Below are positions 1,938 to 55,555 of a DNA stretch of 64,000 nt, piece after piece (positions within the stretch are counted from its first letter, which is position 1; every line of letters starts with the position of its first letter). Source of the stretch: Paramoeba atlantica (lineage: Eukaryota > Protista > Discosea); NCBI GenBank assembly GCA_977017575.1, contig CDRNVI010000003.1, positions 372,001 to 436,000 on the forward strand, given 5' to 3'. The notes beneath the pieces are model-generated. The model had not been told where the DNA came from. It did no database searches and was given only the letters and a program-made list of their open reading frames with translations. Both the position numbers and the translations under genes were made by a program.

Positions 1938-2503
1938 TTTTCTTCTGAAAGGGAGTTCAATGTCATAAAACAGCGTGAAACGGTACGCAAGGAGAGGAAG
2001 ACACACGCAAGTAAGGACGCTTAGACAAATGGTCGGAATGGTCACCGCACCACACCATTTTGTGCATTCACAGTAGCGAGACACAATGACGTGAGACCAG
2101 GGACTTAGCACAAGCAAGACTAAACCAAGAAGAAAACAAAATACAGTGAAAACAACCATGGTGTAATCCACGTGATAAAATAAATGCTTCCTCGCACCAC
2201 TTTGTTCCGCAGATTTGGCTTGCATTGGTTGAATTATTTGTACTCGGATCTGCTCTATCTGGTGCCCCTACTGGCTCGTGTATTTTGGAGTCAACGCATA
2301 CCAAACGTGTATCAAGTATGGAAATTTGACAGGCTAAAACCTAAAAAACATGATAGAAAATCACATGACAGAATATGAGCAATATAGAAGTATTTGTCTT
2401 CCTAGGTCCGTTTAACTGAATATCTACTATGTGTCACCGTTAATCCCGGTGAGAGAATTCGACTATACATATTACAATGTCTCCATTCGATAATCGCACA
2501 AAT

Positions 2504-4489
2504 CTAGAGAAGCCTTCTAAGCGTTCTCACCTTAGTCTTGGAGGATATATCGTCTGCGTCATCCCAGTAGCTGTCAATAAGCCGGGGCGACGGAGCTCTC
2601 GCGGGCGAGCTTAACGTGTCGCCGCCGGGAGACAGCGATCTGTGATTTCTAGACTCGCGACAAGGACGACACAGTTCCAGTTCCCCTAGGAAAGGGCATG
2701 TGCGTAGCTCCCCTTGAGGCAGCAGATAACTCCCACAACTCACCTCGGACCAGAACGGGGCATCACATGGACGTTCCACCTCCTTTGAGTGCACCTCCGT
2801 ACCATTCACAATCGTGATATGTCGAAGCACGGCACAGTTCGTGGAGCCGGTATACTGCATCTTCTTCGACGGAGAGAGCTGCGCAAACTCCTCTCCACCA
2901 GGTGACTTACCCCGTGTTGGGGTCCTCCCAAACGAAGTAAAATTCAACGGCAACTTATCCCCAGAGGAGCGATGCAACGCCCCTCGCTCCGAACGCGCAA
3001 TCAACTCGTGCAACACCGAGGTCATCTCCTCCACCACGACCCCACTTTGTTGTGGCCCCAAGAGAGACCCCGAATCCCCCCGAACGTTTAGTTTCCCTCC
3101 TCCTCCTTTTTCCTCCCTCCTTTGCGGGGACGCCATCCCCCCTCCTTCCCAACCTTGTGGCTTCGGCTGTGACAGACTCCTGGTCACCACAAGCGTGTTC
3201 CCCACATTGCTCTCCGCACTCCGTCGCGGGTGTAACGGAATCACCAAATCCCGTGACGCCCTTCCCCGTTTTCGTTGGTCATCCGGGGCCGACCGGCGTT
3301 CCGTCACGGTTCGTACCAACGTAATTTCCGGAACCCCGTGTGGGTCGGAGGGGGCCGTTGTTGTTGTTGTTGTTGTTCCTATGTTATGCATTGTTCTCTC
3401 CTCACCCCTTCTTCCCCCTTTCGTCCTCTCTTGAGGACTCAACAACTCTCCCCCGATCTCTCCCTCCTCCTCCTCCTCCTCCTCCCCCGTACTCACCACT
3501 AAGGAAGGGGAAGTACCCGAGGAAGTGATCAGAGAAGAAGAGGAAGAGGCCATAGAAGAAGTCATCATAGAAGTCATAGAAGAAGAAGTAGTAGCAGTAG
3601 TAGTAGTAATAGTAAAAGAAGAAGAAGAAGAAGGGGAGGGGGAGAGGGGGGGGAACGAGGCGGCCCCTCCCAGCCTCTCCGGGGGCAGGGTGTGGAGTCG
3701 GGTACTGGTGGCCACACACGGGGAGGTGTCGGGGCTGGAGAACGAGCTGGAGAGGTAGGGGGGGGAGGGGGAGAGCGTGGGGGGGGTAGCCGTGAGAGGA
3801 GTCGTAGTGGGAGTAGGGGAGGTGGAGGCCGAGAGACGACCGTGGGCGGTGTGCGGGGGGAGGTTAAGGGAGTGGGCGGGGTGGGGGGCGGGGAGACGGT
3901 CGGGGGTGGTGGTGGTGGTGGTGAGGGTAGGAAAGGCAGGGGTGATGGGGTCCGTGCGTCGACGAAAGGAGGCGGTGAGGTTACGCCAGTGGGAACCGGG
4001 GCGGGTGGGGTGGCTGGAGACGGCGGCGAGGGGAAGATTGGGGGAGGGGTCGGGGGAGGGGGTGGTGGGAGTTCGGGTACGGTTCGGGGGGAGGGTACGG
4101 CGTGCACGGATGACTTTTTCGTACGGAGGAGGCTTGAGTTTTCCTGTTCCTCGTTCAGTGGGGATATCGGTGGATCCCCACCTCTTCATGTCGACGAGGG
4201 TGAGAGAGGGCTCGGAGGGGGCGGTCTCCTCTACGCACCACGAGACGCTCCTTTTAACATCAAACTTTATAGGTTGAAAAGGCGCGCTCCCATCAGTTTC
4301 GGCATTCGATGACTTGAATGTGGGCGGTGAAGAGATGGATACATCGCCAATAGGAATGTCAGGAGATGTATGAGGTTCCTGAAATGTGTGTGTCTTTGCT
4401 GCGCTGTCAGCCTCTGAGTCTGTACAGCCCCACTGTACAAGAATCACTACACAAATCAGCATGTCAGAGAGGCGTCTTCTGCTGAGCAT
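2504..4489 (-). CDS. Hypothetical low-complexity protein (Pro/Thr/Ser-rich then Glu/Gly-rich), 661 aa
   Basis: Long ORF on the cluster strand; no recognisable domain; composition follows the GC/skew island it spans. Confidence 0.55.
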   Translation of the reverse strand: MLSRRRLSDMLICVVILVQWGCTDSEADSAAKTHTFQEPHTSPDIPIGDVSISSPPTFKSSNAETDGSAPFQPIKFDVKRSVSWCVEETAPSEPSLTLVDMKRWGSTDIPTERGTGKLKPPPYEKVIRARRTLPPNRTRTPTTPSPDPSPNLPLAAVSSHPTRPGSHWRNLTASFRRRTDPITPAFPTLTTTTTTPDRLPAPHPAHSLNLPPHTAHGRLSASTSPTPTTTPLTATPPTLSPSPPYLSSSFSSPDTSPCVATSTRLHTLPPERLGGAASFPPLSPSPSSSSSFTITTTTATTSSSMTSMMTSSMASSSSSLITSSGTSPSLVVSTGEEEEEEEGEIGGELLSPQERTKGGRRGEERTMHNIGTTTTTTTAPSDPHGVPEITLVRTVTERRSAPDDQRKRGRASRDLVIPLHPRRSAESNVGNTLVVTRSLSQPKPQGWEGGGMASPQRREEKGGGGKLNVRGDSGSLLGPQQSGVVVEEMTSVLHELIARSERGALHRSSGDKLPLNFTSFGRTPTRGKSPGGEEFAQLSPSKKMQYTGSTNCAVLRHITIVNGTEVHSKEVERPCDAPFWSEVSCGSYLLPQGELRTCPFLGELELCRPCRESRNHRSLSPGGDTLSSPARAPSPRLIDSYWDDADDISSKTKVRTLRRLL

Positions 4490-4858
4490 ATTAATTTAGA
4501 AGATGAGAAAAAGCACTAAGATAAGCCTATAGAATTTCTTTAGTTTTGTAATACTTACATCACATATAGTTTGACTGATAAGCTGACTTGAATCAACCAG
4601 AAAAACTATAATTTGGTTAAAAGACAGCCGAACGTGCACCCATTCAATCGTTTTAGCATGTCCTTATTGTGTTCATGCATTTCATGTATGTTAGGTCTAT
4701 CATTTCTTTTATTTTCCGTCGTAATAGGTTTCGCATATTCGTGCTTTTTTGACCAGAGAATAGTTTATCTTCAGTGTTTTACCAGTTTGCTCTTGTAACA
4801 CGTACTGCTACGCTACTAACACTACTAACTACTATGCTACTTACGTGTAAAATTAGTA

Positions 4859-7800
4859 TTACCTCGCAAGGCCCATCTCACCAAACAGATCCGATAACGG
4901 AATATATTGTCCGACAGCACTGTGCTGATAACGCTGCGCTAGGTGATGCAAATCGAAGTAGTAATCGTAGCCTTGCGGGGGCAATGTATCCGAAGCGGAT
5001 CTTCTAACGGCTGCATCAAACTGAGCTACAGAAAGGGGCTGGCCGACCAAGTCACCCTCGACAAATTCCCTACAGATAGTGTGCTGGTGCACAACCCAGA
5101 CTAGGGCTTTGGCAAGTCCAGTCGCGTCGTGAGAGATAGATGGCGGGTGTAAGCGCTCAAGCACGGTGTACAGCGTCCCCCATACACCTTGGTTTTCAAT
5201 AATTTTATCTTGAATGCGACCTTCCACATATGACAAAATATGCCGTGTGCTAAACAGTGCTTCAAAATAATCGAATTGCTGACGAAGCACATCTTCAGTG
5301 ATCCGTTCACTTTGCTCATCCTCCAGCATCTCATCCTGAGTTAAGTGTAAAGAGAAGTTTACGTGTTTGGTGTAGTAGTTACCCTGCGCTTTTCGAGCGC
5401 TTAGCGTTACACAGTTCATCACGTATTTAAAAGGAATTTCGAAGCTGCAACCTGGACAAGAATACCAAGGATGAGGCTGGATCAACGATTTCATATTTGT
5501 GAGGTCTGATTTCGGATCCAAAAGGCGTTCTACTAGGGCGAATGCTTTTTCTAAAAAATATTTGTGGGGCTGAATGGTGATGGTAGAGCGACATTTTATA
5601 CGGGGACATTGTACAGAAAGGTGTGATGCTTTTACAAACACCTCTTCAGGATTTGCATATCGCTGAGCCTGTACAAATTTCTCCTTTTCTTGATCGATAT
5701 GAATCGCAGAGGTCGAACTTGTATGCACCACTTTTTTAGGATCTAGTCCCATAGCTTCAGCAACCATTTCAAGATTACACCCATCAATGTGTTCTAGAAG
5801 TCGTGTGACAGGGGGGAATAACTGCGTGTTTACGTACCACAAAATATCTGGCCCGATACTGGAATTTTCCTTCATTTCAAATGGATGAAAACAACGTTGT
5901 GATAACTTTGTACCATTGCTTGGCACAGAATCCGTAGTTTCGGCTTCACACACGATGTACGGAATCAGATCCCCGACTTGAACTGACTCGTTACGCTCTT
6001 TCATACGAAGGGCCACACATACATGAGGATGATCTGCGACGTTTTGATACTCCTTTGGTTCTTTCGCGAGACTCTTGTAAACAACAAGGTCATCTAATGA
6101 TATCTCATGATTCTTTATCCTTTCTGCGAGTTTCAAAAGGTAGTCTGTAATCATTTCTGAAGTTTCTTTCTCTTGCGGATTTTCAGTAAGAATGGCTTCA
6201 AGAATAAAATTGCATGCATTTTTCGATAGAGCACACCACTCTCGACGAACAACATCTAGTCCCTTGATTTCTCGACGCATTTTGATACCCTTTTCCATAA
6301 AATCCACCACTTGCAGGGCAGCATACTTTTTCTTTCGAACAAGCAACATTGTGCGAAATATTCCATCAATATCGATTTCCAAAGTTTTGTAGCTCTTGTT
6401 AACCGCGTCTTTTATTTGCTGCGCAACTGCACGTACTGCGGCCAAATCTTGTGTAATACCTGTGCTAATCATGACGGAGTCGGTATCACCATATATCACT
6501 TGCAAATTCGGATTAATTCGTGGAACAAGTTCTACAGCTTGTGTCAGTGCATCTCTACCTTGCTGCGTAATTAATTCAGCCAAAAATTGTGCGTAGAATC
6601 TACTGTAACAAAAACCTAAACAACCGTACATGGAATTTGCAGTAAGTTTTAGAGCTTTTTGTCTAATTTCTAGCTGCCTTCGTTTGTCTTCCTGTTTCAC
6701 TGAATGTATTAGCTTTTTGACCTCTCTTCGACTATCTACCAACTCTTTGAGAACTTTGGGAAGTATATTTCGATGTTTACAAGGTCCTTGTAAACTCTTG
6801 CGGGCACAGTCTTCACAAATCAATTGATCAGGGGTGGGTAAACTCGCTATTGCCGTCTCACTATCTGCACTGCTCAAAGTATGGCGTACTGTCGTAAAAC
6901 AAATGTTAAACTCTTGGATGATGCTAGGATACAAGCTATTAAAGTCGAGCAAAAGAACATAGTCGGTGTACAGACCACGTCGGGGTTCCAATACCATACC
7001 ACCCATATATTTAGCCTTCCGTTTCCCGCCGATTTCACGTGCCTCGGTGTCCTCTTCATTGTCCTTAGCATCATTTTGTAGAAGTCTGAAGGATGGCTTG
7101 TCCGGCAACACAAATTTGTTAGCGTAAAACTTATGTAACAAAAGAAATTCAATTCGCTCGGCGCGTGCGCCATTCATCGTGCGCGACCATACGTTACCAG
7201 CTAGTGTAGTCATTCTCTTGGTGAGCGGTATGATATCCAAAAACAAGGCCAGTCCGGTTGCATAAAAAGCTTTCTGCATACAATTTGATACGACGCCAAA
7301 AACACCATCTTTAGTGCTCATTTGGCGAGATGGAGGCTGTTCCTCCTCTGAACGTGCGTTTTCTTCATCTCCGGCTAAGTTCGAGATACCAGTTCCCGAC
7401 AAATTTAGCTGTGCAGCCAAATCTCCCAAATTGTAGCTTGTAGCTTTGACGTATTCCTTAGCAATCAAATATGTATCGCAACAAAGACGTCCAGCTAGCA
7501 CTTCACGCTCAGCAGCAGAGGACTCTGCCATACCCCCAACCCCTGCTTGAAGCTTTGGAATTTCATGCAGGCGAAGCCGACCCAACCGAGACCAATTGGC
7601 AACCTTAAGGGCACTCAAGCGATGCAGTAAAACATCTAGATGAAAGGAATAAAAATTGTGACCAACAACGATGTCGGGATCTTCCATAAGCAAATATGAC
7701 AAGAAATTTTCGAGCAGTGTTTTTTCATTGTTCATGATCTCTGGACTCGGAAGTTTACGGCTCAAAAAAGGCTCTTCTAGCCCAAATGGCAAAAGCGAAT

Positions 7801-15562: not shown

Positions 15563-16263
15563 ATGAAGAATTTGAGGTTTATAATTATAAAAGTGAGACT
15601 CAGAATTATAATCTCGCACAAGGTCACTGGGGGAGTGCTCCTTGACTCCTTTCAGAAGCCTAATGGGTTTTTACATTATCTCAAAGACCACGTTGACAAT
15701 GTGACTGTGCAAATGCATAATGCTACCACCCATAACTTGGCAAAAGGTGAATCGATAAAATGTCGTATTAAACAATTGTCTTGGCCAGCGAATTCGCCTG
15801 ATTTAAATCCAATAGAAAATGTTTGGAAACAAATGAAAAAAAAAATATTAAGCCCCACAATCATGCTACCCTCGCCGATGCCATTAAAAAAGTTTTTCAG
15901 ATTCTAAAACGTCCTCAAGAAAAACGTAAAGTGTGCAACACAATTGATTCAGTCCCAAATAGACTTCAAAAAGTGTTGCAAAACAATGGAGGCCATTCCG
16001 GATACTAGTTCTTTTCCTTCAGAGTTAACTTTTGGACACAAGTTCCCTTTTTTGTTCTATTTTTGATATGGTAAAAAAGTGTCTTTTTTTTTATTTTGGT
16101 CAACTTTCGGGTCACCCAGGGGGCACCAGGGAGTCTCTATGAAAAAAAGGCGGCAAAGCTCTTCGCTAGGGGAACGAGATCTCTCCAATGCTGCAAAGAT
16201 GAGCAAAAACGGATAAAAAAAATCAAAATTCCGAGGGGGGGCAAGATCAACTGAAACCACTGT
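15563..16263 (+). mobile_element. 5'-truncated Tc1-like element: degenerate DDE transposase plus right end
   Basis: QMHNATTHN...WPANSPDLNPIENVWKQMK and frameshifted tail VPNRLQKVLQNNGGHSGY. The 16060-16230 segment resembles the long TIR of the 51501-54627 element; it ends ...GAAACCACTG|TA. Confidence 0.8.
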
Positions 16264-16310: not shown

Positions 16311-17108
16311 CAGGGGGGGTAAAGAGGGTTACGGCACCGCTTTCGTTCAAAATTTTGAGATCTCCACGTTCCCGCTGTTTTCAGCTCACTTTAAAAACTT
16401 CAAAAAAAAATTAAAATAAAAATCTTCACTTTTTCCCAAAAATGCCTAAATCTGCATATCGGTTGCCGAAAGGGGGGCTTACAAACAGTGGAAAAGTTCT
16501 ATTGAGGATGAGATACGGTCAAGGTGTGCAATTTACGTGATAAATAATCTGTGTTGCATTTTATTTGAAGTGCATGACATTGGCATCATTTCCCGTCGAG
16601 ACATTTGTGTAAATTGGGATCCTATAGCTCCCGATGTTTAGTTCTAACCCATGTTTGTTACTTGTTCGAAAGGCCATGAGCCGCGGGTATAAGCTCTTAA
16701 GGAATTGGTTATACTCCGATCGTGGAAAACGCCGCGGTAAATCTATTTTGTGGAAACCTCTTCTGACGGCCGCACATGGGCGCACCGCAAACCAGGGTTT
16801 TAAAGTCTTATACTTTATCACTTCTGGAAATAGCCGGCTATAGATCTCAACGGAGAAGTGACTTGGGGCGAAAGCGATCACTCGGCTGACAAACCCTTTG
16901 AGTCGTGCTTTCGAACAATGAAATTTCAAAAAAAGGTGAAAATCGATTTTTTTTCTAATTTCTTTCCAAACAAATTCAAAATATTCCGAAAAAAAGCACT
17001 TCGCTAGGGGAAAGAGGTCTCTCGAATGCCGCCAAACTGAGCAAAAACGGAGAAAAAAAACCAAATTTCGCCTCAGGAGAGGGGGAAGAAAATTTCCTTT
17101 CACCCTCA
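16311..17108 (+). mobile_element. Degenerate Tc1/mariner-like element
   Basis: Begins TA|CAGGGGGGGT and ends CACCCTCA|TA. Carries the shared subterminal motif TTCGCTAGGGGAA-GAG-TCTCTCGAATG...GAGCAAAAACGG at about 17000-17055. Coding remnants are fragmented. Confidence 0.45.
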
Positions 17109-23686: not shown

Positions 23687-24626
23687 CAGGGGTGCGGGTC
23701 TAAAGGTGGGGGGGTCTAAAATTCGTAAAAGTTGTCGAATTTTGGAAAATAATAGCGCATTGGATAGCTCTCACAGAGTTGTGTGTTTTAGGCGAATTAA
23801 AATCCTGCGATTTTAACGTACATATTTTTTGTTACCATATTTCGCTTTTTTCCCTTGCAGAAATTACATTTTTTACTAGAAAATGCCCCAAAAGCGCGCT
23901 CGCTCGAGGACTTCCCGTGGAGTACTGAGCGATAGATCGTATTCTTCCCCCGCCCCCGTCAAAGAGAGCCACCGCATGCTTTTGGTGGCGGAATACGAGC
24001 GCACAGGATCGTACTCCGCTACGGCACAGCACTTTGGTGTTCATGAGAACACTGTAAAACGTTGGGTTGAACGTTTTACCCTTACGGGTGACGTGTTAAC
24101 GGCATCCCGAGAGCGTGTTTCGACGGTGGTTACTCCTGCGCTCCTGGATGTGGCTCTTAAGCTTGTCGACGAGGGGTATGACCTTGTTTACGGCGTAGAG
24201 AGCTGGAGCGCTCTTCTGGTCTGTGATGGACACAGACAAAAATCTTCTTCGACCCCGAAATCGACAGCAACTGAAAGCCGCTATTGAGGGGTCTTTCCTT
24301 AAATTGAAACAGACCCACTCTGCAACGGTTAAGAAAACGTTGAAGAGTTTCAGGAAGCGTTGTGAAATTGTTATTAGTCGGAACGGGGGGCACTGTGGTT
24401 ACTAATTGTCTTTTGCAATCCAAATTACAGAAATTATTGACACCACTAAAGTATTGCAATATGTGTTTTTGACCCTTACATGAAAGGGGGGTACCCCCCA
24501 AACCCCGGAAGCTACCTATCCTAAAACATACAACTCTGTGAGAGCTATCCAATGCGCTATTATTTTCCAAAATTGGACAACTTTTACGAATTTTAGACCC
24601 CCCCCACCTTTAGATTCGCACCCCTG
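23687..24626 (+). mobile_element. Internally deleted Tc1-like element (940 bp)
   Basis: TA flanks at 23685-86 and 24627-28. About 105-bp TIRs (CAGGGGTGCG..TCTAAAGGTGGGGGGG...TTTTAGG). HTH N-terminus (FGVHENTVKRWVERF) joined out of frame to the C-terminal tail (RKRCEIVISRNGGHCGY); DDE core missing. Confidence 0.9.
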
Positions 24627-49043: not shown

Positions 49044-49302
49044 GAAAACAAAAGATAAGGAGAGATAAGCAAAAGCAAGAGTCTAAAATTTTACAAAACG
49101 ATGAGTAATTTTACGTTTAAAGGGTAACCTAGAGTGTAAGGCCAAGGGAAATGCACACTAAGTGTACTTTACCTTGCTACCCCTACTTTAGTGTGCCTTA
49201 CACTAACTACACCTTTGGTGAGGATTTATCCCTTTAGCAACACACTTTATCCCCCCTGTGCTCCCGGTACAAAACACTCCTGTTCAAAAAAGTCGTGTCC
49301 AT

Positions 49303-50571
49303 TCACGGGTTTACCTCACCCTCCCCCCCTCTCCCTATCTCCTCCATCACCCCCGCCATCAGCAGCGGAAACACCAATGTCGCCTCACACTCCACCACCG
49401 CCACCACCGTCCTCTCCCCCCCCACCCCCCCCACCCCCTCCCGCACCCCCCTCCCTGTGCTGCACCCCACCACCTCCCGTACCCCACACCCCACGTCCCG
49501 CACCGCGCTCACCATGTGGCTCCACGGCAGCCCCTCCCCCAGCACCACCACCCCCACCCCCATGGCGCCCCCCCCCGCCCGGAGCCCCGCCCGCAGCCCG
49601 GCCACGTCCCCCACCCCATCCAGCGCGAGCCCGGGGGACCGCGACGCGTGGAAGAAGACCATGTCCCCGAGGGAGCCGTCCGTGGGGGCGGGGCAGAACA
49701 CCGGGGCGCCGTGCCGGGCCGCGCCCTGGACGACGCTGTGGGGGTCGTAGGGGGGCGGGTGGGGGTCGCTCTCGTGTAGCCGTGGGTGCGTAGTTCCGGG
49801 GCTACCGGTTGGGGGGGGGGTACAGGGAGGGGGGTTGTTTAGGTTTTCGTGGCTACATGAGGGCGTGTTCGGGTTGTTCGTTTTAGGGCTACATGACGTG
49901 GTGTTGTTGGTTTCGTTTTTATTTCGATAGGTAGTATTAGGAGGACATGTGGTGTGATGAGGGTTCTTTTTATTTCTACATGTAGGATCATTGTTGTTGT
50001 TCTTTTCATTTCTACATGGACTTGTATTATTGTAGTTATTTTTATTCGTAAATTTAGGATTATTATTGTACCGTGCCGCTTGACTCAAATGCTCTACGAA
50101 TCGAGAAGGGGTAAGAGGGTTACCCTCGTGGACCAATTTGTCCAAAATCGGGTTAATAAAGTCCTCAAAAGCGGCATAGTGGGCATTAGGAATCAAGAGG
50201 TTTCCAATACGGTTAAGGCCACGGTTACGGAGCGTGTCCCCGGGGAGGGTGAAGGACCCAAGGAGAGTAGGACCGGCAAGAGATTTAATAAGATCCTCCT
50301 CGACGGCTCCGGCAGTGGTGACGATAGCATCAATGAGACCGGAGTGTGTGAGAGCAGCAAGGTGTTCACGAAGGCCGCAGGAGACCATGTTGGAGGTGAA
50401 ACCTAGGAGGATTTTGTATTCGCCGGGGTGGTCACGACGACGGCGGAGCATCTGGTGAAGGGTGCGGTGAGCGTGGTAGATTTCCGAGGCGGGGGGTCCG
50501 GCGTGCTGGTAGTCTTCCAGAAGTTCGGAGAGGGAGACAGTGTCGCGGGATAGCCAAGAGTTAAATCTCAT
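49303..50571 (-). CDS. Deoxyhypusine synthase paralogue, probably catalytically dead (prozyme-like), with Asn/Thr/Pro-rich insert
   Basis: FTSNMVSCGLRE, VTTAGAVEEDLIK, GLNRIGNL, PVFCPAPTDGSLGDM and EATLVFPLL are present; the GSDSGA..DEAVSWGK catalytic segment is absent. Start set at MRFNSW because the longer ORF overlaps the upstream gene. Confidence 0.8.
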   Translation of the reverse strand: MRFNSWLSRDTVSLSELLEDYQHAGPPASEIYHAHRTLHQMLRRRRDHPGEYKILLGFTSNMVSCGLREHLAALTHSGLIDAIVTTAGAVEEDLIKSLAGPTLLGSFTLPGDTLRNRGLNRIGNLLIPNAHYAAFEDFINPILDKLVHEGNPLTPSRFVEHLSQAARYNNNPKFTNKNNYNNTSPCRNEKNNNNDPTCRNKKNPHHTTCPPNTTYRNKNETNNTTSCSPKTNNPNTPSCSHENLNNPPPCTPPPTGSPGTTHPRLHESDPHPPPYDPHSVVQGAARHGAPVFCPAPTDGSLGDMVFFHASRSPGLALDGVGDVAGLRAGLRAGGGAMGVGVVVLGEGLPWSHMVSAVRDVGCGVREVVGCSTGRGVREGVGGVGGERTVVAVVECEATLVFPLLMAGVMEEIGRGGEGEVNP

Positions 50572-51238: not shown

Positions 51239-52408
51239 TTGTACCCAATTTAACAGCTAAGAACATAATACTCGAATCCCTATTTGATATAATATACTAG
51301 GAATCAGCTATAAGTCCCCCCCCGAATTTTAAAAAAACTGGTCTGTTTAATATCATCTTTCTTTTGAACGCGTAGAGAATTTTACATGCGTTTCCCGCCG
51401 TTTAAACTGGTTTTTCTCAACTCATTAGGATCGAATTATTTTTTGAAAAAAATGGGCCGAACAAATGATTTTGTTTACAAAAATGCTCCATATTTTGATA
51501 CACCCATGGACAGAAGTGTGCCCCCGGCCTGGCAAATGTCAATTTTTTTATCCGTTTTTGCTCATTTTTGCAGCATTCGAGAGATCTCGTTCCCCTAACG
51601 AACAGCTTTGCCGACGTTTTTTCGTAGGGACCCCCTGGTACCCCCCTGGGTCCAAAAAACATGGTTTTTGTGTCCATATTTTTAGAACAGTCAATTTTTC
51701 TAGTATATCATCCTTTTTTCTCCGTTTTTTCTGCATGAGGACCCCGCCTCGTATAAGTCACAAACGAAACATCGCTTTGTCCATTTCGGAGAGAACAGAG
51801 ATAGCTAAACAGCATAAATCTGGCGTCAGCATCACCCAACTTCATAAAGAATTTGGTCGTGGCCGCCGTACAATTAGAAAATTTATTAATCTCTCAAAAA
51901 CAAGGTAATGAATTGTCATCTCCACCGAAATCAGGTGGGCCAAAGCTTTCAAAAAGATTTGTATCAAAGGTGAAATCAATAGTTGATAAGGAAAATACAA
52001 AGGAAGAGGGTTGCTTGACGTACAACTTGGTTCATGATCAATTAAAAAGGAAAGGGTACAATTGTTCCATTAAGAAAGTCGTTCGTGTATTACATAACTC
52101 AGGGTACACGAGGATGGCCAAGGCACGGAACTGTGACCTCACCGAACGGCATAAAGCCCTTCGTGTCGCATTGGCTAACGATTTGCTTTCTCATCCCCCC
52201 CGAAAGTTGGATAATATAATTTGGACCGACGAAAAACTCTTTCTGTGTGTTGTTCATGGGGGTGGGCATTTTTTTATTGGGAAAAAGGGGGGCCCCAAAA
52301 AGCGAATTGCGGGTATGAGCCATGCAGACGCCCACAAAGTAATGGGCGAAACTATTCTAAGGGCCTTCAAAAAACGACAAGGATGCTTAGAGTATTTGAA
52401 GGAAAATG

Positions 52409-53649
52409 GGTGAAATTAAAGCAAAATTCGCCTTTCTTGAAAAAAAAAGGAAAGTCGTCCGCACTAAAAATAACTGTATTTTTTTTGTATCGTATCATGT
52501 ATTTCCACTTTTTCCTTTATTTTTCAGATTCATTTTTCAGATTCAGACTCCTCAACTCCAACACATGCCCTGTGAAGGATGCAACGGTTTCGCTTGCCGA
52601 GGAAATCTCACTTTGAGCAAAGTTTCTGTGTGGAGCGAATCGAAATGCAGGGAGTGGTTAAGAACCCATAAGTTGGTGGCTCAGAAGGTTGTATGTTATA
52701 AAAGACTACACAAGGCGCCCTATACTATGCACGTCACTGACGGGAAATGGAGATGTACTGAAAAATACAAAGGAATGTACGCCACCTTAGGACCTCTCGT
52801 ACCTGGAAGGGCACAAAGAAGTGCAAAGCAAACATTAAAGTACATAATTTTGTACGTTCGTGGTGGAAGACATTCGGATTCGGCAGCGGAGACAGAACTT
52901 AGTCAGCAGACCATTGTGTCTCTAAGGCAATGGATGGATGGCATGATGGCCACAGCTCATGTTCGCCGACGTATCAGGAATCGCGGCAGCGTTGCTTCAA
53001 TGCAATGCGATGAGACATTTTTTTCTGTACGGAAACGTCACCGAGGTTCTCATGGTGCAAGACGGGTGCGAGATGATGGTACAGAAGCTGCACAGACAAT
53101 TGCTGTGACTACTCGAGCGAACAATTTATCTGAAATGTTCATGGAAGTTGTACCTGATCGTAAGGCAAGCACGTTACTTCCTCGAATTGAAGATCTGGCG
53201 AGCGGGGGGAGGACACAAATTTGGACCGACGGGGCGCGTCACAATATCCGCCTTGGTGGACGCTATAAGTGGAATAGCGTGAACCACCGCCGAGAATGGA
53301 TAGCAGAAGAGGGTGTCCACACAAACACTGTGGAGTGCGCGAATTCGGTGGCGAAGAAGAGACTTAATCGAGAAGGAAACGTATTAGGAAGGAAAAAGGA
53401 TAAACGGGCAGATGGTGTGCAAGCCAATGCTGAAAAATGCAACGGCAGCCTACGGTACAATGGCGGCGATGTAATGCTGCGCATCCTACAGAATCTACAA
53501 GATCATTGTCATTGTATTCATTTGTAAGTCTTGTCCAAGTATTTAAGTCGAAAACTAGAAGCGGAAAGTGTTGATTTCATTGCACCAAATTTTTGAAAAC
53601 CGGAAAAAAACATTTTTTAAAAAAAGGCAAATTTTGCTTTAATTTAACC
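52409..53649 (+). mobile_element. Merlin (IS1595/IS1016-like) DNA transposon with intact transposase ORF
   Basis: TIRs GGTGAAATTAAAGCAAAATTCGCCTTT / AAAGGCAAATTTTGCTTTAATTTAACC; exact 8-bp TSD GGAAAATG (52401-08 and 53650-57). Confidence 0.95.
52565..53527 (+). CDS. Merlin/IS1595-family DDE transposase (320 aa)
   Basis: QCDETFF, VPDRKASTLLP, IWTDG, VNH, GVHTNTVE; Cys-rich N-terminus. The ORF-track ATG at 52406 lies in the TSD, so the likely start is MPCEGC at 52565. Confidence 0.9.
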   Translation: MPCEGCNGFACRGNLTLSKVSVWSESKCREWLRTHKLVAQKVVCYKRLHKAPYTMHVTDGKWRCTEKYKGMYATLGPLVPGRAQRSAKQTLKYIILYVRGGRHSDSAAETELSQQTIVSLRQWMDGMMATAHVRRRIRNRGSVASMQCDETFFSVRKRHRGSHGARRVRDDGTEAAQTIAVTTRANNLSEMFMEVVPDRKASTLLPRIEDLASGGRTQIWTDGARHNIRLGGRYKWNSVNHRREWIAEEGVHTNTVECANSVAKKRLNREGNVLGRKKDKRADGVQANAEKCNGSLRYNGGDVMLRILQNLQDHCHCIHL

Positions 53650-53730
53650 GGAAAATGTATGGGTTCAAATGGATAACGCCACAACCTATAATTTGGCAAA
53701 AGCTTGAGCTTATAAACTATACCATTCCTC

Positions 53731-54133
53731 GGTGAAAGTGAGGCATTATTTCACATAAAAAATAATTTGTTTCGTTAATTTTTTTATGTGTTCTAAGTGT
53801 TGCCTTATCATATTTTACGGGCACTGAAAGTATTTTTCTGACATTTGTTTACATACAGCTGTACTTTTTTCGCGGTGACGGTACGCTTGATAGTGGGAAA
53901 GAAGCGCGACATAATCGGCTGAAGTTCGGCGCAGAAATTGTGAAAAGTAAGCTAAGGAGAGGAAAACATGAAGATTATGCCCTCCGTCGCCTGTTTTAGA
54001 ACCTCAAATGACATTGCGAGAACGTAGAAATCGTTCTAGAACAAGGGCAAGAGAGTTAATTTTTTCTTTTTTACTAAAATAGGGCGATAATAAATGTTTT
54101 AAAAAAAGTGTGAAATAATGCTTCACTTTGACC
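53731..54133. mobile_element. Non-autonomous Merlin-type MITE (403 bp)
   Basis: 25-bp TIRs GGTGAAAGTGAGGCATTATTTCACA / TGTGAAATAATGCTTCACTTTGACC; 8-bp TSD CATTCCTC / GATTCCTC (1 mismatch); non-coding interior. Confidence 0.9.
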
Positions 54134-55555
54134 GATTCCTCTTATGAATTGGCCACCCAACTCTCCAGATCTCAATCCCATTGAGAACGTTTGGAGCGTG
54201 ATGAACAAATTGTAAAAAAAAAATTTAAGCCACACAACTATGTAACCCTGACAAAGGCCATAGAAAAGGCGCTTAATGCTCTAAAACGGGCCCCACACAA
54301 ACAAAAAGTGTTGAATTCCATCAATTCTGTTCCCAAACGTATGCAAATAGTTATTCAGACCAATGGGGAGCACTGCGGATATTGATACTTCTTCCTTTTT
54401 TCTCATTTTATCATTGAAAGGGTGATTTTTTCTGGATGTCTAATGTACCATTTTTTTGTTTTTGGTCTACTTTGGGGTCACCACCAGAGCACCAGGGTCC
54501 CTATGAAAAAAAGGCGGCAAAGCTCTTCGCTAGGGGAACGAGATCTCTCGAATACTGCAAAAATGAGCAAAAACGGATAAAAAAAATGACATTTGCCAGG
54601 CCGGGGGCACACTTCTGTCCATGGGTGTATATTTACCGGGTAAGCCCCCATAAATACAATCACTGCAGGAAAAGAAGATTGCGCAAAGACAAGCTTAATA
54701 TCCAATATGCCACCCCCCGCTCTCCAACACCTTGTTCATACGTTTTAAGTACTCTGAACACATTTATACCCATTTTCATACCATTTTTTATCAAGTTTAT
54801 ATTTTTTAGAGATGTAAGTAGTGGAAAAACCGCATTTTCGTTCAATAACAAACGAAATGCGCATCGTGCGCTCCGAGTTGAGGTAACTCGGCCTGTGGTT
54901 CCTCACCACGGGTATAAAAAGGGTAGCGTCGATGTGAAAAAACAGGGGAAATTTGACTGCACATTGGAAAATCTCATTTACCTAGGGCTGCACCGATAGC
55001 CTGCACCAACCCCTGAAAGGTTTCTTGTCTGGGCACACAAATCCGTCCCTCCGCAAGGGGGCCCAGGTGAAAATAATAATTTATTATTAGAGGTTAAAAT
55101 TATTAATAATTCTGCTACTATGACGTCAACACGGCTCACCCAAGAGGTGTGAGCCGGGTAAGGGAGCTGGTTCCCTGAGGGGAGGGTCCGGGACGGTCCT
55201 CCGAGTACTGAGCCTAGTCGGTTATCAGCCCGGCCTCTTAGAGTGAGGGCGCCAGGAACATTGCGATGAGCGGGTTTGAACTCGCCGTCTGAGCACCATG
55301 TGCTTCAAACTTTGAATTCTTGCCACTCCGCCACCTCCTCCTCTCCGCCATCTCCTCCTCCTTTAGCTAGAAGGGTACACCGAATTGGAATAATAATAAT
55401 ATGTAAAGTTTTGCCAGTTTTTCAACCTCTTCCCACCGAAAATACAAACCGCGGTCTCGGTGCGGTCTCGGGCGAAGTACTCGCGGCCCCTCAATTGTAG
55501 ATTGAAGCTAATGAATCCTAAGAACTAGACCTAACAAGAAGACCTAACAAGAAGC

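Follow-up and report, generated by a model that had tools for sequence, protein, structure and literature searches.

Positions 51501-54627 of a 64-kb stretch of the Paramoeba atlantica assembly GCA_977017575.1 (contig CDRNVI010000003.1, positions 372,001 to 436,000; this whole stretch is referred to below as the window) hold a Tc1 host element that contains a Merlin transposon and a Merlin-type miniature inverted-repeat transposable element (MITE), raising the question of how and in what order this nest was built, and whether the Merlin inside it can still move. A first, sequence-only reading had proposed these three layers, with an autonomous-type Merlin as the larger guest, and its coordinates proved exact. 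We find that the nest was most probably built up in succession from three cut-and-paste DNA transposons, with two Merlin-type guests entering a dead Tc1 independently of each other. Paralogous Tc1 loci were located using pieces of the Tc1 open reading frame (ORF) as search queries, and the contigs encoding them were then retrieved (ENA ERZ24900291, same organism); the genome sample came to ~130 kb, and the comparison covered 12 loci. Contigs from public sequencing runs X1-X4 were also aligned onto the window, with k-mer depth ratios providing a rough guide to copy number only.

Empty sites and the order of insertion

The Merlin element is bounded by a perfect 8-bp target-site duplication of GGAAAATG (left copy 52401-52408, right copy 53650-53657, 8/8 positions), and the smaller guest lies between CATTCCTC (53723-53730) and GATTCCTC (54134-54141), which match at 7/8 positions. 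Duplications of 8 bp had been read at both inserts, a claim that stands for Merlin and needs the correction of one mismatch at the small element. The inserts are 73 bp apart, close to the 70 bp first estimated within the DDE core, and fall on either side of the second catalytic D of the Tc1 transposase. At the first site the Merlin target is single in the paralogs, reading GGAAATTG in L006 and GGAAAATG in L008, whilst at the second both carry ACCATTCCTCTTATG, a clean empty site from which the target of the small element can be read as CATTCCTC. Public-run contigs omit exactly 52408-53649 and 53724-54134: the joint 52407->53650, present in three runs, represents Tc1 copies without Merlin, and the joint 53723->54135, present in one, skips the small element. 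An insert with its duplication, compared with an empty paralogous site, constitutes the classical proof of transposition, and on this comparison both the Merlin and the small element are proven insertions into Tc1 copies that are elsewhere uninterrupted.

In the paralogs, the first site is preceded by a native 9-bp quasi-repeat, a unit that the window copy lacks. This unit was considered as a Merlin excision footprint, with the paralogs reading GAAGGAAAAT-AA-GGAAA(A/T)TG and the same AA joint appearing in the read contigs, and was rejected as such: distant Tc1 relatives (window 15.6-16.2 kb, and L009) share a seven-residue YLK-VQM spacing, so the quasi-repeat is native and the window copy has lost one 9-bp unit, probably by slippage.

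Events at the locus would have begun with a Tc1/mariner element inserting at a TA dinucleotide and then decaying. Two Merlin-superfamily elements would later have integrated, each on its own, into the Tc1 transposase gene, with a staggered 8-bp cut at each integration giving rise to the 8-bp duplications; the smaller of the two, which has Merlin-related ends, presumably moved in trans. The divergence figures give the same order, Tc1 first and the Merlin-type guests later, since the window Tc1 carries 2.5% private substitutions whereas the Merlin and the small element lie ~1.2-1.3% and ~1.6% from their respective majority variants. In nested transposons generally, younger elements accumulate in older, dead ones, and nesting order records relative age.

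An alternative history is that the nest formed elsewhere and that the Tc1, already carrying both guests, inserted here as a 3.1-kb composite mobilised in trans. Intact Tc1 ends and TA duplication make such mobilisation mechanically possible, and the high k-mer depth of Tc1 ends in read contigs reveals numerous deletion derivatives, which can be mobilised only in trans. However, no other Tc1 copy carries either guest at these sites among the listed contig joints and pieces, the retrieved paralogs are empty at both, and the guests are younger than the private divergence of their host (1.2-1.6% versus 2.5%), leaving this history very unlikely. Less probable again, to the point where we give it hardly any weight, is that the nest is an assembly chimera joining different repeat copies. 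All three layers are multi-copy repeats, and a second assembly of the organism breaks inside Merlin, yet matching duplications surround each insert, and the Tc1 pieces, three in number, align with uninterrupted paralogs in the same order and without a shift. The left Merlin junction is also present in ENA contig L005, and contigs from run X2 span, with 0 differences, both the right Merlin-Tc1 junction (contig 14, 53526-53686) and the left Tc1-small-element junction (contig 15, 53657-53817).

Contig L005 is another version of the nest locus, which passes the Tc1-Merlin junction before stopping 89 bp into Merlin. Upstream of the nest it differs from the window by clusters of single-nucleotide polymorphisms and a 15-bp indel, so the insertion is present in two sequence versions. 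These substitution clusters and the 15-bp indel fall in window 49090-49910, where scattered single-base indels also occur, and may reflect a second haplotype or strain rather than plain error.

The host itself is a Tc1/mariner relic on the plus strand (51501-54627) that measures 1,467 bp without its inserts, bearing out an earlier estimate of ~1.47 kb with TA flanks and long terminal inverted repeats. The TA target-site duplication is read directly at 51499-51500 on the left and 54628-54629 on the right, with the terminal inverted repeats paired at 51501-51633 (plus strand) and 54495-54627 (minus strand); taken to 51498-51633 and 54495-54630, the inverted arms span 136 nt and are 95% complementary. 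The terminal 27 nt occur twice in the window, both times at an element end, with 0 occurrences expected by chance. A Tc1-free paralogous site in run X3, at a loose contig end at 54628, reads ...TTTTTTGA-TA-TATTTACC with a single TA. The best comparison is an uninterrupted 1,581-bp paralog with TA flanks of its own (L006:3763-5343), which is 95.8% identical to the insert-free window Tc1.

Pfam matches to the window Tc1 comprised HTH_23, HTH_Tnp_Tc3 and DDE_3, both helix-turn-helix (HTH) matches falling below the gathering score. DDE_3 reached 28.4 bits on a 23-aa window fragment, just below the cutoff of 28.6, and 32.6 bits on the paralogous protein P0013; this catalytic region includes the WPPNSPDLNPIENVW motif. 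In its TA duplication, long inverted ends, paired-like N-terminal HTH and DDE_3 region, the host resembles the Tc1/mariner (IS630-Tc1-mariner) superfamily, but in the paralog without inserts 32 residues intervene between the second D and the E, differing from the 34 of the classical DD34E (Tc1) and DD34D (mariner) spacings. By these features the host is a spacing variant inside the Tc1/mariner superfamily, and not a classical Tc1.

Relative to L006, the window Tc1 has a 96-bp deletion between the two catalytic D's, a 9-bp deletion beside Merlin and no fewer than three frameshifts of one base each, located behind the HTH, within GGCAAAAGC and close to the C-terminus, and by this alignment it is a dead, decayed relic. 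It had been proposed that removing the two inserts would rejoin the Tc1 frame, needing only the removal of one extra A in TGAG. The frame does rejoin locally and a one-base insertion is present, but it lies in the A-run of GGCAAAAGC instead, and three codons (KEN) found in the paralogs and in distant Tc1 relatives are missing from the rejoined frame. The further deletions and frameshifts make the damage to the host greater than had been described.

Other Tc1-related sequences were also observed. A relic of a second Tc1 subfamily (window 15614-16243 and 16993-17059) shares ~69% nucleotide identity with the nest host and retains a recognisable DDE_3 region and end fragments, and a weaker Tc1-like match lies at 24217-24402. 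Outside the window, L007:1994-2986 is a Tc1 derivative with an internal deletion that removes positions 665-1251 of the L006 copy, and L003:2206-2750 is a 545-bp element with Tc1-like ends. Since the k-mer depth of Tc1 ends in read contigs is 75-120x that of unique sequence, the genome abounds in non-autonomous Tc1 derivatives. The DNA on either side of the nest host (51387-51500 on the left, and from 54628 to 55000 or beyond on the right) is likewise repeated: its k-mer depth in read contigs is 7-27x the unique value, and a paralogous copy of it exists without Tc1. This flanking DNA may form a further repeat layer, the fourth and outermost; a search for bounding repeats, inverted or direct, found none, and no match to the flanks was detected in the window or the retrieved loci. 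Rfam returned no RNA family match in the nest, the window or the loci.

The Merlin element, its family and a small element with related ends

Merlin elements are eukaryotic DNA transposons related to bacterial IS1016/IS1595, with criteria that include an 8- or 9-bp target duplication and terminal inverted repeats of at least 24 nt beginning 5'-GG (Lopes et al. 2021, PMC8101967, citing Feschotte 2004). The larger guest, an autonomous-type element of 1,241 bp on the plus strand (52409-53649), has inverted ends of 37 nt (52409-52445 and 53613-53649) that are 89% complementary and begin GGTGAAATT and GGTTAAATT. Its termini, GGTGAAA and GGTTAAA, display a G/T asymmetry at position 4 that is a feature of the family, and the GGT(G/T/C)AAA termini first reported for the two inserts were as described. 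Its transposase gene (52565-53527, plus strand) comprises 320 codons and a stop. A listed 373-codon ORF begins at an ATG built from the last three bases of the left duplication; we place the start at the ATG at 52565 because an M-x-C-x-G-C start is conserved in the subfamilies (seen in four).

The Pfam domain DDE_Tnp_IS1595 (PF12762) matches the window protein at E = 2.2e-10 (41.2 bits versus a cutoff of 27), and matches the protein of a second Merlin subfamily (P0002) at E = 6.4e-11. As had been noted, the frame keeps its D, D and E residues: D149, D222 and E257 (first and second D separated by 72 residues, second D and E by 34) occupy conserved columns of a 10-sequence alignment and form the predicted catalytic triad. 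Residues 1-142 yielded no Pfam match at E up to 0.1, Zn_ribbon_IS1595 included. A Cys/His pattern, M-x-C-x-G-C-x2-F-x-C ... W ... H ... C ... W-x-C ... C, was observed in residues 1-75 (52565-52790) of all subfamilies. An AlphaFold model built from 10 sequences was poor (mean pLDDT, the predicted local distance difference test, 46.8, with the catalytic half below 50), and a fold search with it returned weak three-helix matches only, to residues 80-136 (Z up to 4.3); no solved structure matches the transposase by sequence. Upstream, a pyrimidine-rich tract followed by three AGs (52478-52557, plus strand; 8-45 nt before the start codon) is conserved among three copies (window, L002 and L001) and, by analogy with kinetoplastid mRNA processing, looks like a candidate trans-splice acceptor carried by Merlin itself.

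Judged by its domain, triad, termini, duplications and empty sites, the large guest belongs to the Merlin superfamily, with which it shares DDE_Tnp_IS1595 with D, D and E, the 8-bp duplications, GG ends of at least 24 nt and a single gene of ~320 aa. It differs in its kinetoplastid-like protist host, in being only 25-40% identical to relatives outside this genome, and in its conserved N-terminal Cys/His pattern without Pfam match. Absence of an N-terminal Zn_ribbon_IS1595 domain is a trait of Merlins in common with the IS1016 group, and published Merlins are described as having no zinc finger; the window protein combines the lack of a Pfam match to that domain with the Cys/His pattern.

Related Merlins were recovered at several loci. 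Full-length copies in L002 (97.1% nucleotide identity, duplication GAAAGTTC) and L001 (90.7%, duplication GTAGTTTT) are frameshifted and broken, respectively, and the copy in L003 (85%) is truncated. A second subfamily is represented in L004 (59% amino acid identity, duplication ACATTTTG, open 319-aa gene), and complete elements of separate subfamilies in L011 (64%, duplication CTATGCGA) and L012 (66%, duplication AAAAAATT). Perfect 8-bp duplications and GG termini were found in 6/6 complete Merlins (window, L001, L002, L004, L011 and L012). With at least four subfamilies and near-identical multi-copy variants, Merlin is, on present sampling, a diversified multi-copy resident of this genome. 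Within the window, a scan of all 64 kb for GGNNAAA...TTTNNCC ends with an 8-bp duplication recovered only the Merlin and the small element, and tblastn with Merlin proteins detected no other Merlin. Searching 1.84 billion representative sequences with HMMER returned only 131 clusters for the transposase at E<=1e-3. The nearest protein-atlas clusters are eukaryotic PF12762 proteins, and the only named relatives among those looked up are transcripts of the prokinetoplastid Papus ankaliazontas (33-36% identity). An unrelated public run also yielded a complete Merlin, on a contig of 1,293 bp (L010:36-1292), with ends beginning GGTGAGACTGAACG and GGCTGGACTGAACG and a 354-aa transposase 40% identical to the window protein.

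The state of the window copy is best read against the majority variant of its family. In run X1 this variant is represented by 597-bp and 368-bp read contigs with k-mer depths of 306 and 294, compared to 33 for the adjacent unique contig (~9x), and in X3 by a depth of 21.7 compared to 3.6 for a unique contig (~6x); given these raised depths, several copies share one identical variant. The window Merlin differs from it at 14 listed sites and by no indels, 10 of the differences being non-synonymous and 4 synonymous, which in terms of codon changes is a neutral pattern. Among them C68Y, V175A, K187N and R218Q alter residues that are invariant or nearly so across subfamilies and relatives down to 40% identity (Cys68 and Lys187 invariant, Arg218 basic in 8/9 relatives); these are private or lineage replacements, with Y68 shared by L002. 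The proportions of non-synonymous and synonymous differences (pN/pS) were 0.071/0.358 against L003 and 0.275/0.858 against L004, compared to 0.037/0.058 against L001 and a ratio of about 1 against L002. At the level of predicted coding sequence, Merlin lineages are thereby shown to be under purifying selection on the transposase, with inserted copies then decaying neutrally. Lineages that stay functional whilst inserted copies decay neutrally are the usual transposon pattern.

These figures bear on whether the window Merlin is itself an active autonomous element and the current source of transposase. In its favour, the 320-codon frame is open with its triad present, the duplication is perfect, the ends show no more decay than those of other copies, divergence from the majority variant is only ~1.2%, and the upstream pyrimidine tract and AGs are conserved. 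However, 10/14 differences from that variant alter the protein, with Cys68, Lys187 and Arg218 replaced by Tyr, Asn and Gln, and in comparison with the closest copy pN roughly equals pS; the gene also runs antisense to the surrounding cluster, and no public run on record as RNA contains Merlin. We regard such activity as unlikely. Activity of the window copy is inferred to be impaired: though open and with its triad kept, it is probably decaying, and family activity probably does not originate from it. The description of this Merlin as intact consequently applies to its open frame and DDE residues, and not to its substituted conserved positions.

At the family level, mobility looks evolutionarily recent, as indicated by the multi-copy variant, the 97.1% copy and the 6/6 duplications. 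The earlier suggestion of recent or ongoing activity is in this way upheld for its first half, whilst for the second, public-run contigs and paralogs revealed no empty allele of the nest locus, no excision footprint and no polymorphism, and RNA evidence was likewise not found. We tentatively raise the possibility that the majority variant, with Cys68, Lys187 and Arg218 and its identical multi-copy contigs, is a currently active cut-and-paste transposon with non-autonomous partners of its own.

The smaller guest (53731-54133) is a Merlin-type non-autonomous element, or MITE, of 403 bp without an ORF of 60 codons or more. Its inverted ends (53731-53755 and 54109-54133) extend over 25-27 nt with 2 mismatches in 25, and its termini are GGTGAAA and GGTCAAA. 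The ends match those of three Merlin subfamilies at 15-17/24 bases, compared to a mean of 6.1 for random 24-mers, which reach 15 or more at a frequency of 9e-5; together with the 8-bp duplication, they identify the element by sequence as Merlin-type. The small element is multi-copy, read contigs over 53781-54059 having ~6x the k-mer depth of unique flanks at 98.4% identity. Mobilisation in trans is the mode we infer for it. No autonomous partner with identical ends was detected, the closest of five Merlin subfamily ends among the 12 loci (~130 kb) reaching 17/24, and one may lie elsewhere in the genome.

Clustering of insertions, probably in tolerated DNA

Why two guests should lie so close together was first attributed to a local target preference or a safe-haven effect. 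The nest occupies a ~4-kb spacer of a minus-strand gene cluster, with its own transposon genes in antisense orientation to that cluster. The 18 further ORFs of at least 250 aa in the window are on the minus strand, save one that overlaps a longer minus-strand ORF. A dead transposon in such a spacer would be DNA that tolerates insertions, which would account for the location of the guests. Merlins lie in or beside other transposons at 5/8 Merlin-bearing loci (window, L003, L004, L008 and L011). The Merlin in L003 adjoins a small element with Tc1-like ends, the one in L004 has a Tc1-like gene 350 bp away, and in L011:730-3339 a hAT-like ORF of 476 aa, which Dimer_Tnp_hAT matches weakly, has a Merlin (2110-3339) at its 3' end. 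With this proportion of loci, a general piling of elements in tolerated DNA is the simpler reading.

The reverse arrangement may also occur. In L008:3493-6314, the right end of a 5'-truncated Tc1 lies 5 bp beyond the last codon of an opposite-strand subfamily-2 Merlin whose own 3' end is missing, which suggests that here Tc1 inserted into Merlin, i.e. reciprocal nesting.

The competing explanation is that Merlin-type transposases prefer this segment of Tc1, as a hotspot of sequence or DNA shape, and that the guests lie 73 bp apart through targeting. Consistent with this, both Merlin-type elements of the 64-kb window fall inside 1.47 kb of it, and in L008 a third element with an 8-bp duplication, 1,025 bp long (3901-4925, duplication AAAAATTT), interrupts Tc1 86 bp downstream of the second site. 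Together the three insertion sites span 168 bp of the 1,581-bp Tc1 (p about 0.03 under uniform placement), and most target duplications are A/T-rich (GGAAAATG, GAAAGTTC, GTAGTTTT, ACATTTTG and AAAAAATT). However, the sample comprises four Tc1 copies, the ends of the L008 element match Merlin ends at only 6-10/24 and are unrelated to them, the Tc1 segment is not unusually A/T-rich compared to the rest of Tc1, and the six Merlin targets have no clear consensus. Merlins beside hAT-like and other Tc1-like sequences, and Tc1-type elements in or against Merlins, also point to general piling. Targeting is therefore a doubtful explanation and the weaker rival, with accumulation in tolerated DNA the likely main cause of clustering; of the two effects first suggested, the safe haven is retained as the simpler, and target preference is weakly supported. 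The 1,025-bp element of L008 has ends GGCTAGGGG.../...CCCCTACCC and palindromic subterminal repeats.

Several observations weigh against the account given here of an ordered nest with a decaying Merlin. A safe haven on its own does not fully account for three insertions in a span of 168 bp. The copy in L002 has Y68 too and occupies another locus, which means that the C68Y lineage was mobilised, perhaps in trans, one or more times since that change. Only 63% of the window Merlin's 31-mers are present in the best run, and collapsed contigs cannot verify repeat interiors copy by copy. Lastly, the second assembly of the organism ends within Merlin, at 89 bp in L005.

Merlin transposons in a kinetoplastid-like genome

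The window carries a single-strand, intron-free gene array, and the named relatives of its Merlin come from Papus ankaliazontas; on this basis we take the host genome to be kinetoplastid-like. By exact sequence, proteins of the window were matched only in ENA assembly ERZ24900291, and at 90% identity they had no named relatives. Merlin-related genes, in the literature searched the only DNA transposons known from kinetoplastids, have been described in Bodo saltans and Perkinsela, where no inverted ends or duplications were found and copies were few and divergent, leading Lopes et al. (2021, PMC8101967) to propose inactivity or domestication and to call for long-read assemblies. The elements described here resemble these in possessing Merlin-type transposase genes that are often antisense to their neighbours. 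They differ in being complete, with ends, 6/6 perfect duplications and at least four subfamilies, and in including multi-copy variants, a non-autonomous partner and proven insertions. A 2025 survey detected no DNA transposons in 57 trypanosomatids (PMC12278014). In the literature searched, we found no report of Tc1/mariner in kinetoplastids and no description of kinetoplastid Merlins later than that of Lopes et al.

As a structure the transposon nest is ordinary among the transposon islands of eukaryotes, except for its setting in a gene-dense genome with unidirectional gene clusters, and in the features tested its elements are ordinary Merlins; the value of the finding is confirmatory and practical. 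The nest provides classical proof of transposition, by sequence comparison, for a complete Merlin and a small element in what appears to be a kinetoplastid-like genome, evidence of Merlin movement in a lineage for which immobility had been assumed. It also gives a relative time line and singles out the majority variant, rather than the window copy, for activity testing. Should that variant prove active, Kinetoplastea would have its first known active DNA transposon, the nest would be a record of its recent hops, and the element could be used as a native tool for insertional mutagenesis.

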